A stretch of 8,079 nt of DNA from Paraphysomonas bandaiensis (taxonomy: Eukaryota > Protista > Chrysophyceae), in contig CBFFRP010000666.1 in NCBI GenBank assembly GCA_965644295.1, forward strand, positions 1 through 8,079, read 5' to 3'. The notes beneath the pieces were generated by a model. The model saw only the letters and a list, made by a program, of their open reading frames with translations. It ran no database searches and was not told the DNA's origin. Positions 308 to 8,079 of the stretch are shown piece after piece. Position 1 is the first letter of the stretch, and every line of letters begins with the position of its first letter. A program made the position numbers and the translations under genes.

Positions 308-1947
308 CTACTTCATAAAAAAGTTTTGAAGTAATTGTAGTTTCAAGGTATCTTGATGCGCACGTTCAAGTCGAGTTGCCTGGTCTTGGGCCACTTGCAT
401 ACGGAAATATTCCTTATAACTGCTATCATCATGCCTGCTGTTGTTTAACTGTGACGCAGTAGCAGACGACGTATATGCATTGCTTTCAGAGGACGACGTT
501 GTTCCGTGAGATACAGGCATCATGCCAATATGAGGTGCATTAGACATTGCAGGCATGCTACGAGGTATGGTGGGTTCTACATGGGACATAGTAGAGACAT
601 TTTGAGGTGCAGGTGATATATGAGGCATATCAGTAGATATTTTCCTATCAACAACGTCCTTTGCAGCAACATCACGACTAGCACAGGCCACAGCAAGCTG
701 CTGTTGCATGGCAGCCATCTCCTCTCTGTGGTCTTGCTCCTGCTTTCGCAGCCGCAACTCCAATGCCTCCAACGTAGAATTTGCCTTATCGGCTGTGAGG
801 TCAATGGCATGATTCTGATATGACAAAAGTGATTAGTATTTCCAAGCTATATCAAGCGTATTCATACCGCTGTGTTCTTGGACTTTCCAGCTGCTCCTTT
901 TGTTTTGTTGATTCCCTTAACTCCCCCGTTTTTTCCCTTGGCATTCCCATTAGTGGTACCTCGTTTCCCTCTAGGGTTTATGCGTTTCTTTGGTGGGGGA
1001 GAGACATCACCGTCGCCATAGCATACAGGCTTCACAGACTTGCGTTTACTCCTCTGGGGGTATTCGATGTTATCCATACCTTCTGTGGAGGGCCTCCCCA
1101 TCTCGTCTTTCAGGGGTGATATCCCATCCCAGACGTAGCCCTGGTCGTGGAGGAAGCGCACCATATCATCGACCACTGCATCGTGGTTTTCAAAGGGCTC
1201 GTCCAGATAGGTATAGCTTTGACGAAACTTCGTCAAACCTTGAACCCTGAACCACACACCAGGTGAAGTCACCTTTTGTAAGAGAACATCGTATCGGGGA
1301 TCCGGACACTTAGTCCTCAGAACTGCTCCTACCACATACTTGGCACCAATTTTGTCTTCCACAATAGCGCGGGAATACACAACGAGTCTGTCCCTGGAGT
1401 TGAAATGAGCAGAGAGTAAATAATACTCAGACAGTTTTTTTCCAACTTTGTCGATGACCTCGAGGTCAGAGTACATGACCAAGGGGGAAGACTTGCCCAT
1501 ATCCATTGTGAACTTACGCTTGACAAAGGTCTGGGAACATCCTGCCAAGACCACAGTAAGGGAGGCGTCTTTTAGCATCATAAGTCGAACTAGCTTCTCT
1601 GAGGAGGTCTCATTCTTCTCCTCAGATACCTCCGCTATCCCATCAGCACCCTCACTGCCCCCTTGATGCTCAGTGGTAGTTGTAGTGCTACCAATTGAGC
1701 AGTGGTCCACCTCATTGGTGAGAGGGGGATCGCTTCTATTCGGGGGCACATCATCAGTGAGAAGGGTCATTGCTTTTGCCTTGTGGCTTCGGAAGCACTT
1801 CTGGCAGAGCTTCATCCTCACGGAGGCGCCTTTCTGCACAGAGGAGAATGTGACTTTGCAATCACAGCATTCAATAAAAGTGGCGTCATCTCCCTCATCC
1901 TCTGATGCACTGGAAAAATCGGAAACGGAGTCGTCTCGCATGATCAT
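308..1947 (-). CDS. Two-exon gene (exon 1 1947-868, exon 2 814-308) encoding an uncharacterised ~528-aa protein: N-terminal CxxC-x17-CxxC zinc finger, central globular region, basic NLS-like patch, coiled coil, low-complexity C-terminus
   Basis: ORFs 862..1947 and 308..826 join in phase 0 (...KNTA|NHAIDL...) if a 53-bp GT..AG intron at 815-867 is removed. ATG at 1945-1947, TAG at 308-310. Motifs: CCDC-x17-CQKC, PPPKKRINPRGKR, coiled-coil-like LEALELRLRKQEQDHREEMAAMQQQL. AT-rich sequence follows the stop. Confidence 0.75.
815..867 (-). other. Spliceosomal intron (53 bp)
   Basis: Minus strand reads GCG|GTATGA...AATACTAATC...TTTTGTCATATCAG|AAT: canonical donor, TACTAAT branch-point-like motif (832-838), CAG acceptor; removal restores the frame between two adjacent ORFs. 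Confidence 0.85.
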
Positions 1948-2430: not shown

Positions 2431-2594
2431 CCCATGTAACTCTCCAGCTCGGCATCTGTCCTTGTTCTATCAGTGCGAGGGGCCACTCCACTGTTAGTTC
2501 ATAGATATGTTTGCCTTGAGCGGGTGTACATGGTACACGGTGCACACCCAGCTCGGTTCTATTTCTTTGTTGCAGTACAGTAAGGGCCCACTTG
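2431..2594. repeat. 164-bp direct repeat, copy 1
   Basis: cccatgtaactctcc...taagggcccacttg is identical to 2691-2854 (offset 260 bp, 96-bp spacer). Confidence 0.97.
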
Positions 2595-2854
2595 CTGTCT
2601 GCATCAGTGAATATAGTGACCTACGGAGCGGGTGCACCGTGGTATTTATATGTATGAATGATATATGCATGCTGTCTTTTCAATACGTACCCCATGTAAC
2701 TCTCCAGCTCGGCATCTGTCCTTGTTCTATCAGTGCGAGGGGCCACTCCACTGTTAGTTCATAGATATGTTTGCCTTGAGCGGGTGTACATGGTACACGG
2801 TGCACACCCAGCTCGGTTCTATTTCTTTGTTGCAGTACAGTAAGGGCCCACTTG
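2432..2854 (+). ncRNA. Candidate structured RNA/ssDNA array: long hairpins A (2432-2533), B (~2536-2641), A' (2692-2793) and partial B' (~2796-2854)
   Basis: A: ccatgta/tacatgg, gctc/gagc, ggca/tgcc, tctat/ataga, cagtg-gag/ctc-cactg, loop gggcca. B: cacggtgca/tgcaccgtg, gctc/gagc, ggt/acc, tgcag/ctgca, cagtaag/cttgctg, loop ggccca. The pairing is clear, but family and transcription are unknown. Confidence 0.35.
2691..2854. repeat. 164-bp direct repeat, copy 2; abuts the truncated RT
   Basis: Identical to 2431-2594; its right end coincides with the loss of RT similarity after ...CTFWDF. Confidence 0.97.
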
Positions 2855-5130
2855 GAAGTCCCAAAAGGTGCATATTTTCGCGTGTCCAGTGAGTTTGGCC
2901 AGTTCGGTGGCCGCTAGGACTCGGAGGATTGCAGTGTCTGTGCCATGTCTCCACCTGTAGCCATGTTGCGCCGGGTGTAGAACATCGTCGTCTTCCCAGA
3001 TTTGGAGGAGTCGGTGTGTGATGATGCGTGTCATCAATTTGCGGAGAACCTCTAGCAAACCGATCGGTCTCAGGTTTTTGAGGGACGTGTTTCCCGGTTT
3101 TTTGAGTAGAGGGGTCATGACTCTATCTCTCCACCAGTGTGGGATATGGCGGTGAGTCCAGAGCGTTTGTAGGAGGCCGAGTACTTCTATTTTTACCTGT
3201 GGTGTCCAGCTTTTAATCATGTTCGTGGTGACCATGGATGGTCCGGGTGCTTTGTCTTTGGCCATATTATCGAGGGTGGAGTGGAATTCGTTTATCGAGA
3301 TCTGTTGCCGGAGGGCTTCCCTTATTTTGACTGAGGTGGATGGGCCGACCTTCGTTTTGCATAGTTTTCGTAGCCCAAGGTGATGTTGGATCGGGATAGC
3401 GGAATTCGGGTGGAGAGGGTTGTTTAGGTTATCGCCGGCGGTTAGCTCTCGCCACCAGTTGTCGTCATGGTGTAATCTTTGGGCGGTGGAATCCATGCCT
3501 TTAGGGAAGGCGTGGTGTGCCGCGAAGTGCTTGTTCAAGGCTTCCTGTATCTCCGATGGAATGGTGATCGTGGCCCCGTCCTCCAGGGTGAGACGGGTGA
3601 GTGCTGGTGTCTGCTTCCGCTTTAGTCCGATGGATTGGAGGACCTGGCGTAGTTGTTGTGTTTCGAGTTGGGCTTGGAGGGCGTGTGTTCTGGTGGTCAT
3701 CCGTTTCCTCATTTCAGCGCGGGCTCTCCCTTGGAGCATTCGCATGAGGCTGTCGCGGAGGTTGTCGAAGGCATTGCCCGTGACATTCGTTGTGGTCCAT
3801 GTCAGCATTTGCCGTGGATATATCGCGGCTCGGATGATGGCAGTGGGTGGTCGGTCGTGGTCCTCTGGTGAGAGGTCGAGAGCAGCAGTGGTGCGCTCCC
3901 ATCTGCAGATTCCTCTCCGGATGATGCTGTAAAAGTATGAGTCGGTGACACGGGGGTGTAGGTGCCCGGATCTGGTAAAGAGTTTTCGTTTGAGGTATAT
4001 GGTCAGATGGAGTGTTGTTTGTAGGACTCTCATCTCGGCAGAGAAGCCATCCTTGAACCGGGAGCGTTTGCGTTGGCATTTCGCATGGATTCTGTTTTTC
4101 TTGGTTCTGTTCGCGTGACGGGTATCATGGGCCGCGTCTAATGTGATACGATGAAGGAGCGCCAGTTTTATGGCTGCATCTTCGGCGGGGTGAGGGTGTG
4201 TGGGGAGCGTGGACAGGGTGTCGTGGTGTTTGTGTAGGTGGGTCTGAAATTCTTCCACCATGTCGTGGTCAGCCGGGTTGATGTTGAGCCGTGGAGGAAT
4301 CTGACGGTGTCGTTCCTTGGGGAGGGTGGGACCTGTCCCGCTAATGTCGATCTGGAGCCATACCGGTCTGTGATCAAATGGCGCTGCAGTGATGGCGTCA
4401 GATGTGTGGCATCCGTTGCGTGTGTTATGAAAGTGTGTAGGAAGAGGTCTATGTAGGATGTGGTCTATTCTGGATACGCCACGGTCTTTCCAGTAAAAGG
4501 TGTGGTATGGTGCCTCCGGGTCAAGGGTTTGTATGAGTGGGGCTGTTAGCTGCAGGGATCTTGCGAATCCTCGGAGGTCCCGTTTTCCTGTTTGTCCCTC
4601 TAGAGTGGCATTGAAATCTCCTCCGACGAGTACGGTGTGATTGTTTGCTCTGGCTTTGGCGATCCATTTGGATATGATGTTTGTGAGGATGTCGTATGGT
4701 CCAGTGGCGCCGTTCCTGTGAGCGTTCTTGCCGAAGGCTTTTAGTGATGCCCATAGTGTGCAGGGTCCATCGGTCGCGGGCTTGGGGGGGAGGTACGCGC
4801 CTATGGTGGTGAATCTTTCTTCTCGGTAAGGTCGTCCGGTGTGAAATTCGATTCGGGAGATGAGCCCTAGTCCTGTGCAGTCGGTGCCTGTGCGGCGGAC
4901 TCTGCCTTTCCACGTTTCGCTGATCACTGCGATAGTTCCTCCCATGTGCGGATCGTTGGGGCCCTGTTTCCGCTTCGTGTTGAGGAATTTACAGACAAGA
5001 ACCCCTGGAAGCTGGTCCTGGATGTAGTCGGCGAGATACGTTGCCTGGTGTTGTGACAAGCGGACGTCGAGCAGGTATAAGCAGTCTATGTGGTGGGTGC
5101 GTATGTAGTGTAGGATAGCTTCGATTTTTT
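2819..5130 (-). pseudogene. APE endonuclease + linker + truncated RT segment of the retrotransposon polyprotein (the part of ORF 2819..5533 that is in the correct frame)
   Basis: From KIEAILHYIRTHHIDCLYLLDVRL onward the ORF carries EEP/APE and RT motifs. The last ~11 codons (QVGPYCTATKK) are read from the 164-bp repeat. Confidence 0.85.
2855..3310 (-). other. Non-LTR reverse transcriptase, N-terminal part only (motifs 0, 1, 2, 2a and start of 3)
   Basis: KDKAPGPS, IPHWWRDRVMTPLLKK, LRPIGLLEVLRKLMTRII, LHPAQHGYR, GTDTAI, CTFWDF. The expected following xAFD, the QG motif and the YxDD motif are absent. Confidence 0.95.
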
Positions 5131-5180
5131 CCAGGGTTGTTGGAGGGGTTACCGTTGACGTTCCATGTGGAGAATGTGAA
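4345..5180 (-). other. Apurinic-like endonuclease (APE/EEP) domain
   Basis: FTFSTWNVNG (5151-5180, alternative frame), IDCLYLLDVR, GGTIAVI, IGAYLPP, VLVGGDFNA, HTFYW...SRIDHIL, FDHRPV, all in canonical order. Confidence 0.92.
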
Positions 5181-5540
5181 GGTCGTGGTAGATGACAGGG
5201 GGCTGGAGTCCGGCTCTGGGGATTCGGGTGACGCATGTGCGTGTGGTTGCTTGGTGGCAATGAGATCGCGCCACTCTTGCGTGCAAAATTCAACGTCGTC
5301 AGCATATGCCTCTCTTGCTTGTAATAGGATCTCAAGCGGCCACTTGGGGTCTTGCCAATATCTGTACCCATAGTGTACAAGTAGTTCTTCGTGAGTTGCA
5401 ATGTTCCGTGTGGTTCTGATGTAGATTCTATCGTTTTTCGTGTGAAATTCGACATTAGCAGCCCTGGCCTGTAGTGGATCGTTGATGTAGCCCGCTGCGC
5501 ATAGTATGCGTTTGTTTCGTTTGTCCCTTGCATCTATCGC
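5131..5540 (-). pseudogene. Frameshifted coding segment not shown in the ORF track: SET C-terminal half + linker + APE motif I
   Basis: Stop-free manual translation from GCG at 5540: AIDARDKRNKRILCAAGYINDPLQARAANVEFHTKNDRIYIRTTRNIATHEELLVHYGYRYWQDPKWPLEILLQAREAYADDVEFCTQEWRDLIATKQPHAHASPESPEPDSSPLSSTTTFTFSTWNVNGNPSNNPG. Confidence 0.9.
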
Positions 5541-5720
5541 AAAAATGTACCTTTCGCGTCTTGAACAACGTAGTCGGAAATGTAATCAGCGGACCTGGCT
5601 TCTGCGATGGGTATTCGGTGTCCGGTGCACTCGGAAATAATGGCATGGGCAGGAATCGGCTCTCCAGCGTACAGGGCGTTCCCCTTGATATCGGTGTCCG
5701 CCCTGCCCATTAGGACCTTG
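5355..5720 (-). other. SET domain (protein-lysine methyltransferase fold), split by a frameshift at 5541-5545
   Basis: KGNALYAGEPIPAHAIISECTG (cf. GxGLFAxxxIxxGxxIxEYxG), SDYVV, AIDAR, AAGYINDP..ANVEF (cf. ARFINHSCxPN), IYIRTTRNIATHEELLVHYGYRYW (cf. xxxAxRDIxxGEELxxDYG..YW). Confidence 0.88.
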
Positions 5721-6286
5721 TGTCGAAGCGTTGGGTCCCAAGTGAGCGGGAGGGGTGGGTGAGCTGTTTGAAGTAATGTGTCGAAAGTAGCCTGTGGGCA
5801 GTATATGGCGTGGGTTTGGACTTCGTCGGAGATTTCTGCGTAGGAGTGCGTGGAACGGGCCGTTCGGGCAGGCTGCTTTCGCTTAGTGACGGGCATTAGG
5901 TTCCGTGCTTCCTGTCCTTTGGTTCGCTTTGCTCCAGGGGCGTTTCGGGATTGATGAATGTGTGGTGGCGTATCAGGTGAGGGGGTGCCCGCTGTCGCGC
6001 GCGTGCGGTGTTGAGAGTGGTTGGCGGGTGGCGTCGGTGGTGTGGAGACGTGGGAGCTCCTCCGGGGGGGAGTGGTCGTCTTGCATTTTGTTGGTGTCGA
6101 GGGCCAGGGTGTGGTGCTGTGGGTGGTGCTTTGCTGGGGTTGGATGGGAGGCAGGGGCGCCGGGGGGACAGTGTCCCTAATGCTGAGTTCTGTTGGTCGG
6201 GTGGGTCTGTGGAGTGGTGATTTTGGAAGTGCTGCTTCGAGGTCGAGGAGTGCATTGTCTAGCTCGGCTGCTAGCCCTCTAGGGTT

Positions 6287-6769
6287 AAGGTGATAGTAGT
6301 GGGCATCGTGTAGCACAATATGTGGTCGATCGTCGGTGATGGCATCTCTCAGTTCGTCAGATGTCCAGGCGGGGCTGTGGTGGCTGGGTGCGTTGGGGAT
6401 TCCGACGATTGTGATATTGTCACCGTCCGCAGTCCATGTGGTGACTGGGCCAATGTAGGAGGCTAGAATGTGTAGCTCGCGGACTGAGAGCCATTGTTGG
6501 ATGTCTTGTGGAGTGGTGTATGTGGGGGAATGTTTGACTGTTAGGGAGTGGATAGCATGCTCTGTTTTATTAAGTATGGTTGGAGTGCAGTGTGGGCTGT
6601 CTAGTGCTATGGTCCTAAGGTTGCCAAGCCAGTGGCCTAGATGTATTCGATGCTCTGGTTTCCGGAGGTCGAGGTTCCAGAGGTTAGCCGTGTGACGCAT
6701 TCCCATACAAAGCGTGTGCAGTCGGTATAGGGTTCCGTATGCACAGTACCCATTTGCGGGTATGTGGTA
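6287..6769 (-). other. OTU-like cysteine protease domain
   Basis: YHIPANGYCAYGTL (cf. xPxDGxCxY/F; Cys codon 6743-6745), WLSVRELHILA (cf. WGxxxELxxLA), HIVLHDAHYYHL (cf. HYxxL; His codon 6299-6301). Confidence 0.7.
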
Positions 6770-8078
6770 AGCTGCTTGAACGGACGCGGTAGTTACGTGT
6801 ACACGTAACACGCGCCCAGCTGTCTGTATAGCTGTACGTGAAGAGTTCTGGCTGCCCGGGTCGGCTAGGCGTGCAGTAATGGCTCGGGCACCGCGCTGTG
6901 TGGTGCTGAGGGTGAGGTGGCTTGCGGGTATCGTGATTGGGCGTTGGTGGGACTGATGGGGAGTGGTACTTCTCCCAAGGGTGTGGCTGGGGGGTCTTCT
7001 TCGCGTGGTGGAGAAAGTGAGAGAGGGCCGATTTGGCACTATGACGCGCAGCTACGAGTTTGGATCCGATGTCCGGTATTCGGAGAAGAAAGTAATGTTT
7101 GTTGATTGTAGCAACGTTGTGTGTGGTCTCAGTCATGGGATCGTGGGTTTGACGGCTGTGTAACATTACCCAGCCACTAGATAGGGAGCCTGGGGTTCCG
7201 TTCCATAGTCGGTAGTTGATACGAAGGAGCTGGAGCAATGTCTGGAAGTCGGTGATCTCCATGTGATGATCTGCAGAAAGTGCGCATCGCTTCGGCGGCA
7301 TGGTGGTTAGAACCTTGTGCGCGCCTTGGAGGATACTGAGCAGTCGGCTTGTGTGTGCCTGTCCGGATGCGAGGCAAAGTCGTTGTAAGTGGGTAATGAA
7401 TTTATGCAGTTCTTTTGCATCATTAGCATTTTGTAGGGGGGCTGTGGAGTAGTGCCCAGGCGAAGGAGCGGTATGGATTTGGTATGTGGTTGCAAGGGGG
7501 GCTAGGCCGCGTTCTATTGTGGCTCTGAAGTCAGCCTCCCAGTCGAAGTTGGCGACTTGAATGTAGTTTGCATCTTCATTTATGATTTGAAAAAGCTGTC
7601 TCCAGTCTGTTGTGCCTGCCATGACGGTGTTGTGTATGTATCGTAGCAGGTCTTCGCGTAGGGAGACTGCAACTCGATGTGTGTTGTCGTATGCGGTCCA
7701 GGCGTTAGTAAGGGGACTGGTGAACGGTAGGGCTCCCCGCCGGGCGGGCGGGGGTTGCGGTGTCGAGGGGGATGTTGACACACATGAGGTAGGCTGGTGT
7801 TGTGAAAGGGGAATGTCGGGCGTGTATTCGATCAGGGATTGAGCTGTAGACGGGAGAGTTGGTTGGTCCGTGGACGCGTCCCGAGCGGCATGCTTAGGTT
7901 GCGGGATGGGCGGAAAGTAGTCAGCAAGTGTCAGGCTGTGCCGGTGCCGCCTGGGGGGTTGCCTCGTGGTGCTTGGAGCGGGTGTAGCGGTGAGGGCATC
8001 GGGTTTGTGAGTGTGTCCTGGGATTGTGGGGGGTTTGCGTGGTCGGCGCTTGGGCGGGCCATCGCCGCTGTCGTCGCT
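6684..8078 (-). pseudogene. Upstream polyprotein segment, open at the window edge: Pro/basic disordered region, helical region, possible degenerate OTU-like domain
   Basis: The frame of ORF 6684..7781 (listed start is GTG) continues without a stop to 8078 (SDDSGDGPPKRRPRKPPTIPG...), so the true start is probably outside the window. Confidence 0.7.
6792..6809. repeat. Perfect 18-bp palindrome
   Basis: gttacgtgtacacgtaac equals its own reverse complement. Confidence 0.95.
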
Positions 8079-8079
8079 G

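Follow-up and report, generated by a model that had tools for sequence, protein, structure and literature searches.

The window analysed here, a stretch of 8,079 nt of contig CBFFRP010000666.1, carries on its minus strand a broken copy of a long interspersed nuclear element (LINE) in which two putative ovarian tumour (OTU)-like Cys/His domains and a SET domain precede an apurinic/apyrimidinic endonuclease (APE) domain and a reverse transcriptase (RT). The G+C content was 36-50% with no strand bias at positions 1-2850 and 51-59% from approximately 2850 to the window end, where the minus strand was strongly richer in C than in G and in A than in T. The window is eukaryote-like DNA that is not taken to be human, and Rfam and tRNA scans of it were empty. 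Once three frameshifts were bridged, the minus strand from 8078 to 2852 contained approximately 1,741 codons with no stop in the frames used, as counted by alignment to P0004, an intact open reading frame (ORF) on the related locus L003. This agreed with the original prediction, which had been made from the letters of the window alone and had given three frameshifts and about 1,740 aa. The order of domains was N-terminal low-complexity region, first and second Cys/His domains (D1 and D2), SET, APE and approximately the first 84 residues of the RT. The parts of the copy are listed below in coding order, where L001 is an 85%-identical copy found elsewhere.

7731-8078, minus strand: N-terminal low-complexity region, which aligns to P0004 from residue 48
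7060-7730, minus strand: D1, first OTU-like Cys/His domain, supported by alignments A3 and A6 and by a D2-D1 comparison with hhalign
6931-6943, minus strand: frameshift 1 (frame 1 to frame 2) in the D1-D2 linker, a 5-nt gap relative to L001 in the nucleotide alignment
6236-6838, minus strand: D2, second OTU-like domain, supported by its conserved Cys and His, by the ratio of nonsynonymous to synonymous substitution rates (dN/dS) and by an AlphaFold (AF2) model of its P0004 orthologue
5744-6235, minus strand: Pro/Thr-rich D2-SET linker with basic runs, 49% amino-acid identity to P0004 compared with 75% for SET
5355-5743, minus strand: SET domain, split by frameshift 2, with Pfam SET and PRDM2_PR matches on its C-terminal half
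5541-5545, minus strand: frameshift 2 within SET, from frame 2 to frame 1, where a T5 run is one T longer than in L003
4358-5174, minus strand: APE, from FSTWNVNG to FDHRPVW, 75% identical to P0004 and matched by Pfam Exo_endo_phos
5125-5130, minus strand: frameshift 3 just past APE motif I, from frame 1 to frame 2, where an A6 run is one A longer than in L003
3104-4357, minus strand: conserved APE-RT linker, 68% identical to P0004
2852-3103, minus strand: N-terminal 84 residues of the RT (LRPIGLLE, GYRWRHGTD, CTFWDFQ), covering RVT_1 profile positions 2-76 only

The open minus-strand pieces were located at 8078-6687 (frame 1), 7051-5537 (frame 2), 5585-4992 (frame 1) and 5533-2822 (frame 2). 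Local alignment of each piece to P0004 showed that all four are collinear with one protein, with frame switches at approximately 6936, at 5541-5545 and at 5125-5130. The broken pieces were searched separately, with no read-through protein joined and no consensus built. A single frame reads through in L001 at the site of frameshift 1, and the in-frame stop at 5534-5536 belongs to the out-of-frame stretch past frameshift 2 and is irrelevant. The C-terminus of SET (EELLVHYGYRYW, 5390-5355) and APE motif I (FSTWNVNGNPS, 5174-5142) are on the same frame-1 piece, 5585-4992, with no stop and approximately 60-70 codons between them, so that the linkage of SET to APE is independent of frameshift correction. 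A stop-free connection of about 60 codons had been predicted here and was borne out. The single extra homopolymer bases of frameshifts 2 and 3 could be sequencing errors, while the 5-nt gap of frameshift 1 and the truncation on the 3′ side are real damage. At the other end, the first 50 or so codons of the element and its 5′ untranslated region fall outside the window edge.

Pfam searches of the window pieces produced a match to Exo_endo_phos (E 8e-9, 36 bits) above the cut-off and a match to RVT_1 (E 1.5e-5, 25.3 bits) under the cut-off, the latter because the RT domain is truncated. Both matches sit in one 904-codon frame with APE N-terminal to RT, and since an APE is followed by an RT in one ORF, the element is, by these predicted domains, an APE-type non-long terminal repeat (non-LTR) retrotransposon, that is, a LINE. 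The RT of the window was 90% identical to the RT of L003 over residues 1-84. Comparison with the PDB showed similarity to L1 ORF2p and the R2 RT at E 3.5e-5 to 2e-4, a similarity that does not separate the clades (L1 3.5e-5 compared with R2 1.8e-4). The 84 residues of the window copy fall short of a complete RT with its catalytic motifs, which was found in the relatives.

The N-terminal half of the SET domain is read in frame 2 (KGNALYAG, 5686-5663) and the C-terminal half in frame 1 (GYINDPL, 5492-5472, followed by the C-terminal motif given above). The C-terminal half was matched above the cut-offs by Pfam SET (24.7 bits against a cut-off of 22.4) and by PRDM2_PR (27.4 bits against 27), and the orthologous domain scored 33-40 bits over the full SET profile (positions 1-105) in five relatives; the SET domain that had been proposed by eye was thus recovered by profile search in the window and in the relatives. 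The C-terminal half of the window alone had no match in the PDB. A profile of the family SET domain matched KMT2D best in the PDB (E 2e-8), and KMT2C, yeast SET1, EZH2, SETD7, vSET of PBCV-1, PRDM12 and PRDM9 were also matched, all over the whole domain. The invariant features of the family were the N-terminal GxG-like KGxxLYA, the Asn of the NH motif that belongs to the S-adenosylmethionine (SAM) pocket, and EELLxNYG with a Tyr at the catalytic position. Methyltransferase activity is plausible.

D2 contains PANGYCAYG at 6760-6734 (Cys codon 6745-6743), WLSVRELH at 6493-6470 and HDAHYYHL within 6325-6287 (His codon 6301-6299). The Cys (xNGYCAY) and the His (AH[YF][YF]) were kept in all copies covering them (alignment A7). 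In D1 of the window, the Cys position reads RGLAPLATT (7511-7473) with no Cys, and the His motif KHYFLL was kept (within 7124-7083). The D1 Cys was missing in the window and in L001, its closest relative, and was present in P0004 and P0028; D1 of the window lineage has lost its Cys and is probably non-catalytic. Comparison of D2 with D1 by hhalign aligned the Cys and His motifs with a probability of 81% and an E value of 1.2e-5, a result that was significant only with P0028 and P0033 included and insignificant in an earlier comparison. Judged by this profile alignment, D1 and D2 are homologous.

The alignments of D1 and D2 were merged into one of 12 rows (A8). In a PDB profile search with A8, the two best matches were chains of 170 and 176 aa named RNA-directed RNA polymerase (L) (E 0.04, aligned across a central W..E..I..P..W motif), which we take to be constructs of the N-terminal viral OTU (vOTU) domain of nairovirus L. 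The AF2 model of P0004 residues 557-770 based on A8 reached a pLDDT of 76.9 and a pTM of 0.75, with the Cys opening a helix and the His opening a strand of a C-terminal hairpin. In a Foldseek search of the PDB with this model, 49 of the 50 best matches were OTU proteases; these included nairovirus vOTUs (best), OTUD2, OTUD3, OTUD5, otubains, yeast Otu1 and OTUs of Wolbachia and Legionella. In the BFVD the best match had an E value of 2e-4, and OTU proteins of pandoraviruses, a clandestinovirus and an iridovirus were among the matches, together with L or replicase proteins of a tenuivirus, a nairovirus and an arterivirus. An OTU fold of the Cys/His domains is probable on the basis of this model.

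The N-terminal region of the window carries SDDSGDGP (8078-8055) and a basic run KRRPRK (8051-8034). A motif Y(S/T)SD(S/D/N)SGDGP with a basic run was observed before each D1 unit, at 8078-8034 in the window, at residues 77 and 543 of P0028 and at residue 51 of P0004, and the motif and the D1 module are duplicated as a whole in P0028. The motif could delimit modules, be a point of cleavage or act as a nuclear-localisation signal.

None of the ORFs of the window was present in the protein collection by exact look-up, and an HMMER search with the 505-aa piece containing D2 and the N-terminal half of SET against 1.84 billion representative proteins produced only two short matches. The contigs and clusters of these two matches led to a small family of relatives from at least six ENA metagenome assemblies, one NCBI contig of a metagenome-assembled genome (MAG) and one transcript of the Marine Microbial Eukaryote Transcriptome Sequencing Project (MMETSP), all of marine origin. 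Scans of JGI metagenome contigs and of viral contigs showed no relative, and a scan of genome contigs showed only the already known MAG contig PBSN01000010.1.

In the natural ORFs of the relatives, Pfam SET, Exo_endo_phos and RVT_1 all scored above the cut-off, with RVT_1 at 72 bits in L003 and 55-64 bits in P0028 and P0033. P0004 is a continuous ORF of 1,774 aa with a window-like N-terminus, both Cys/His domains, SET at residues 908-1012, APE and the start of the RT; beyond it, L003 carries the remaining RT and a further 640 codons in other frames. The fully intact ORF P0028 on L011 has 3,175 aa with three Cys/His domains, SET at 1254-1358, APE at 1419-1656, RT at 2113-2405 and a C-terminal region. 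A third lineage is formed by P0033 (2,240 aa), which has SET, APE and RT. L002 contains one open frame of 1,072 codons with Pfam SET (33 bits), APE and RT and shares 42-51% protein identity with P0004. The same SET-APE-RT order in a single ORF was found in P0023, P0003 and L005, all with Pfam SET, Exo_endo_phos and RVT_1. SET was located 45-70 residues upstream of APE in the family. The LINE polyprotein that had been predicted, with one or more OTU-like domains and SET upstream of APE-RT, was therefore found in the same order in the intact ORFs P0004, P0023, P0033 and P0028, and the relatives were seen to carry SET and Cys/His domains upstream of APE where other copies might have lacked them. 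The architecture is real and recurs in at least three diverged lineages.

P0026, the MMETSP transcript (Transcript_18373), was 98% identical to L011 over 1,398 aa, which indicates that at least the L011 lineage is transcribed in a cultured marine protist. PBSN01000010.1 (L005 and L006) is a 7.3-kb contig of a Nitrospiraceae MAG, isolate NP85, from the North Pacific, and it contains a 99%-identical, differently frameshifted copy of the L003 element. Its presence in a Nitrospiraceae MAG is bin contamination, and its proteins stand in NCBI nr as bacterial hypothetical proteins.

An unusual base composition of the coding strand was common to the whole family (window 2855-8079, L001-L005 and L009-L011), with A 0.28-0.30, C 0.28-0.36, G 0.19-0.22 and T 0.16-0.21. 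This composition results in proteins rich in Thr, Pro and His. It was not shared by the distant relative L008 (C 0.21, G 0.33) or by L007, a relative from Ectocarpus. L007 (Ectocarpus fasciculatus CAXNAF020000690.1, 10001-12842) has the nearest named RT, at 30% identity, and the RT is followed by a weak match to the family C-terminal region. Neither APE nor SET was detected upstream of the RT in L007, which is probably a 5′-truncated copy of a distant LINE.

The relatives carry after the RT a conserved region of approximately 600 aa that is absent from the window (L003 6903-8828, P0028 approximately 2575-3000, P0033 approximately 1566-2000 and L008 3222-4958). Its motifs FTDGS, E, DCKA, SHPERR and D follow the order of the catalytic residues of RNase H and are followed by C-x2-C...H...C. 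RNase H is kept as a lead only: the motifs stand in the right order, but searches with Pfam and PDB profiles matched nothing in the region. Nothing there pointed to a restriction-like endonuclease.

A further ORF of 349 aa was observed at 568-1617 of L011, directly upstream of the 3,175-aa polyprotein and in the same frame, with one stop and seven codons between them. Its composition was different, and no counterpart was found upstream in L003 or L005. It was not counted as an ORF1 of the family since the other lineages have no counterpart; possible identities are an ORF1 specific to this lineage, an extension made by readthrough, and a gene of the host.

Comparison of the window with L003, in which synonymous sites were saturated (pS approximately 0.7), showed that SET (pN 0.155, 75% amino-acid identity) was as conserved as APE (pN 0.144, 75%). 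The corresponding amino-acid identities were 83% for the RT start, 55% for D2, 41% for D1 and 39-49% for the linkers. Identities of SET and APE were 0.49 and 0.51 between L002 and L003 and 0.68 and 0.74 between L004 and L002, with linkers at 0.26-0.49. Between the window and L001, where synonymous sites were unsaturated (dS 0.46), dN/dS was 0.10-0.13 for D2 and 0.33 for D1. These patterns of substitution show that SET is under purifying selection of the same strength as APE and that D2 is under purifying selection too. The conservation of SET at the level of APE and the low dN/dS of D2 argue that both are functional parts of the polyprotein and not passengers.

The lower limit of the element had been placed at 2855, and the RT was indeed found to end abruptly at 2852-2855, in CTFWDFQ, where the relatives go on with KAFDS. 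Two repeats lie next to this break.

2431-2594, no strand assigned: first of two exact 164-nt direct repeats
2691-2854, no strand assigned: second exact 164-nt direct repeat, 260 nt from the first start to start and abutting the RT break

The end of the RT coincides with the edge of the second repeat, with CAA(G) common to both at the junction, and the strand bias of the element ends there. No match to the 164-nt repeat was found in any related locus. As far as visible, the repeats are not part of the element and were not shown to be its 3′ end; they may belong to another repeat family, represent part of a tandem unit or have arisen during assembly. Target-primed insertion does not yield LINE fragments that keep the 5′ part without the 3′ part. 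Since the window copy has kept its 5′ part and lost its 3′ part, the break is read as a later deletion or rearrangement, or possibly as an assembly join. The window copy is in consequence a defective, dead fragment that lacks the 3′ part of the element including most of the RT. The related contigs stop inside or shortly past the ORF.

The three frameshifts of the window copy and its odd junction with a 164-nt repeat could hint at a one-off chimera or misassembly, in which a LINE fragment landed or was assembled beside SET and protease genes of the host and no such polyprotein exists. This explanation is already contradicted and is extremely improbable: uninterrupted ORFs with the same order were present in a transcript and on contigs that come independently from different samples, the order was kept in lineages only 42-57% identical in protein, and the linkers were collinear. 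The frameshifts, moreover, differ from copy to copy, which fits decaying insertions derived from intact masters and so excludes a one-off chimera. A fragment of a rolling-circle transposon of the Helentron type is also contradicted already, by the RT domain, and can be taken as next to impossible. Helentrons do have an APE fused to Rep/helicase and OTU-like proteases, and a SET ORF occurs in a Phytophthora proto-Helentron (PMC4067079). In the family described here, however, RT follows APE in the same ORF (RVT_1 reaching its highest score in L003), no Rep or helicase domain was present in any member, and the SET and OTU-like domains are within one polyprotein and not in separate ORFs.

Two further well-formed ORFs were identified on the other side of the repeats.

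311-826, minus strand: ORF of 172 aa, coiled-coil-like, adjoining the 361-aa ORF in a different frame
865-1947, minus strand: ORF of 361 aa, Cys-rich in the stretch CCDCK...CQKCF and basic in its tail

Neither ORF had a Pfam family or a homologue in 5.8 billion proteins, and the pair may represent either an orphan gene of the host or a further element of unknown type. Just upstream of the 361-aa ORF, at 1943-1998, an imperfect palindrome is formed by a (TA)n/(TG)n microsatellite.

The explanation favoured here, with moderate confidence, is that the window at 2852-8078 holds a defective copy of an APE-type LINE from a marine microbial eukaryote; the element is very large and apparently has a single ORF, and the domain roles proposed below form part of this explanation. 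The intact polyprotein has up to 3,175 aa and consists of a low-complexity N-terminus, two to three tandem Cys/His domains of probable OTU fold, a minimal SET, APE, RT and the C-terminal region of approximately 600 aa. LINEs are established to use APE for nicking the target and RT for copying their RNA at that nick, and the element would accordingly copy itself by target-primed reverse transcription with its APE-RT. The SET domain, held beside the DNA-nicking domain, would methylate a chromatin-protein lysine, in the likeliest case one on a histone tail. The methylated protein would lie in the element's own chromatin or at, or close to, the site of integration, and this methylation would keep new copies out of host silencing. 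Such methylation of a chromatin-protein lysine to counter silencing is put forward tentatively, the balance lying somewhat against it. D2 would act as an OTU-type cysteine isopeptidase or peptidase which cuts the polyprotein at its linkers, removes ubiquitin-like modifiers, or does both. The OTU domains of arteriviruses, tymoviruses and nairoviruses process the viral polyprotein and/or remove ubiquitin-like modifiers. Retention of catalysis by D2 is evenly poised.

Several results weigh against this explanation. The 3′ end is missing from the window, and neither a 3′ tail nor a target-site duplication is visible here. The OTU-like domains had no OTU match in Pfam, NCBIfam or PHROGs at E ≤ 1-10 for the window and its relatives, PDB profile searches with D1 or D2 alone produced nothing at E < 0.01, and the A8 search likewise gave no match at E < 0.01. 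The Foldseek scores in the PDB were weak (best E 0.022, probability 0.93, TM 0.34-0.43), and the D2 model depended on the merged alignment of D1 and D2, since an alignment of five rows gave a pLDDT of 41.6 and meaningless Foldseek matches. Of the original prediction of OTU-like domains, the motifs in the window and, with weak scores, an OTU-type fold predicted on the relatives were upheld, and the profile match was not. In SET, the His of the NH motif is replaced by Asp in all members (GYINDP for canonical NHSCxPN), as in PR domains, some of which are inactive. This change and the good score of the PR-domain model indicate that the domain is PR/SET-like. It also has no pre-SET or post-SET (Zn) modules, which makes it a minimal SET.

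The accessory domains may be real but catalytically dead, with SET binding histone tails or other proteins and so tethering the APE-RT complex to particular chromatin, which would target integration, and with the OTU-like domains being ubiquitin-binding modules or structural spacers. In its favour are the ND in place of NH in all members and the PR-domain model scoring nearly as well as SET. Some PR/SET proteins without a canonical NH motif are active, PRDM9 being an example, and this counts against a dead domain, as do the invariant catalytic Tyr, SAM-pocket Asn and GxG-like N-terminal motif. For the OTU-like domains, D1 is without its Cys in the window and in L001 and is nevertheless constrained, as expected of a non-catalytic part, whereas D2, with a dN/dS of approximately 0.1, has the same Cys and His in every copy that extends over them. 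Reader or tethering domains are the chromatin domains most commonly captured by transposons (10.1101/2021.11.30.470311). On balance, catalytically dead domains are considered unlikely. An explanation that is quite unlikely is that SET acts on a non-histone protein, such as the polyprotein or ribonucleoprotein of the element itself or a host restriction or repair factor, that D2 serves only in self-processing and that no chromatin mark is made. Many non-histone proteins are substrates of minimal SET enzymes, those like SETD7 among them, and SETD7 was one of the SET profile matches; it is also plausible that processing is needed for a polyprotein that exceeds 3,000 aa and has long linkers of low complexity. 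The best sequence matches, however, were histone H3K4 and H3K27 enzymes, and SET is fused directly to a DNA-contacting endonuclease; neither point is decisive.

The favoured LINE could also be extended to a self-contained chromatin editor, although this is speculative and improbable. SET would then write a methyl mark on a histone lysine of the target nucleosome during APE-RT integration, the OTU domain or domains would strip ubiquitin-like marks, for example from histones or repair factors, and the insertion would become unsilenceable. In the same proposal, this LINE lineage might have been a source or co-source of the APE, OTU and SET modules of stramenopile Helentrons.

In the usual view, a LINE is a minimal machine with three components, namely a chaperone, a nickase and an RT. 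The family described here is conserved and transcribed in marine protists and has a putative lysine methyltransferase domain and tandem predicted OTU-fold domains in a LINE polyprotein, under selection that appears as strong as that on the endonuclease. It would extend the capture of host epigenetic writers by retroelements, so far mainly known from elements bearing a DNA methyltransferase (DNMT), to LINEs and to protein-lysine methylation. The family offers a testable system for asking whether a transposon can set the chromatin state of its own insertion and how a giant LINE polyprotein is processed, and it may be connected with the SET and OTU genes of Helentrons, which are themselves unexplained. 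In practical terms, it flags a eukaryotic transposon contig that was mis-binned in a bacterial MAG.

Compared with known LINEs such as L1 with its ORF2p, the family is alike in having, in one ORF, an APE that is N-terminal to a long linker and RT, and in leaving copies with frameshifts and truncations; the C-terminal C-x2-C..H..C motif of the relatives is also LINE-like. Unlike those elements, it has approximately 1,250-1,400 extra residues upstream of APE with two to three probable OTU-fold domains and SET, its single ORF reaches 3,175 aa and no ORF1 is common to its lineages. NeSL, with a Ulp1-like protease, and Dualen/RandI, with a cysteine protease and two endonucleases, are non-LTR elements whose polyproteins likewise include a cysteine protease domain. 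Compared by domain content, the protease fold of the present family appears to be OTU-like and not Ulp1/C48 or Josephin, and no second, restriction-like endonuclease was detected as in Dualen/RandI. To our knowledge, SET has not been reported in the NeSL or Dualen/RandI clades. No LINE with SET fused to APE-RT was found in literature searches, Repbase and Dfam lying outside the search, and the original statement that no such LINE was known to have been described is in keeping with this. As far as the literature found goes, the combination of SET, OTU-like domains and APE-RT in a LINE has not been previously described.

Among viruses, the OTU proteases at the N-terminus of nairovirus L, in arterivirus PLP2 and in tymovirus PRO resemble the predicted domains of the family in that a giant polyprotein of replicase type has an OTU fold at its N-terminus or close to it. 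They differ in sequence, with only 9-16% identity, and the family is set apart by large helical insertions in D2 (TM 0.3-0.4), by tandem domains and by a cellular retrotransposon as carrier. vSET of PBCV-1, which was among the profile matches of the family, is similarly a minimal SET without flanking Zn modules. Helentrons and proto-Helentrons, whose hosts include stramenopiles, were the only transposons found in the literature that combine APE, an OTU-like protease and, in Phytophthora, a SET gene (PMC4067079). In contrast to the LINE family, they are rolling-circle DNA transposons with Rep/helicase, have SET and OTU as separate ORFs and have no RT.

Chromatin and epigenetic domains have been found in other retrotransposons, namely DNMT in retrotransposons of dinoflagellates and charophytes (PMC5890265), a methyl-CpG-binding domain in arthropod Copia (PMC6673714) and chromodomain or Tudor domains in Gypsy elements (PMC12477816). 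A survey also lists gene models of SET-transposon fusions as a class only, without a SET-APE-RT architecture (10.1101/2021.11.30.470311). These elements are similar to the present family in that a chromatin or epigenetic domain of host type is built into the polyprotein and conserved, with a proposed role in escaping or steering silencing. The family differs in its carrier, which is a LINE, in the captured writer, which would be a methyltransferase for protein lysines, and in the position of that domain beside the endonuclease. Within this group, the DNMT-bearing retrotransposons are, by analogy, the closest conceptual parallel to the SET-bearing LINE (PMC5890265).

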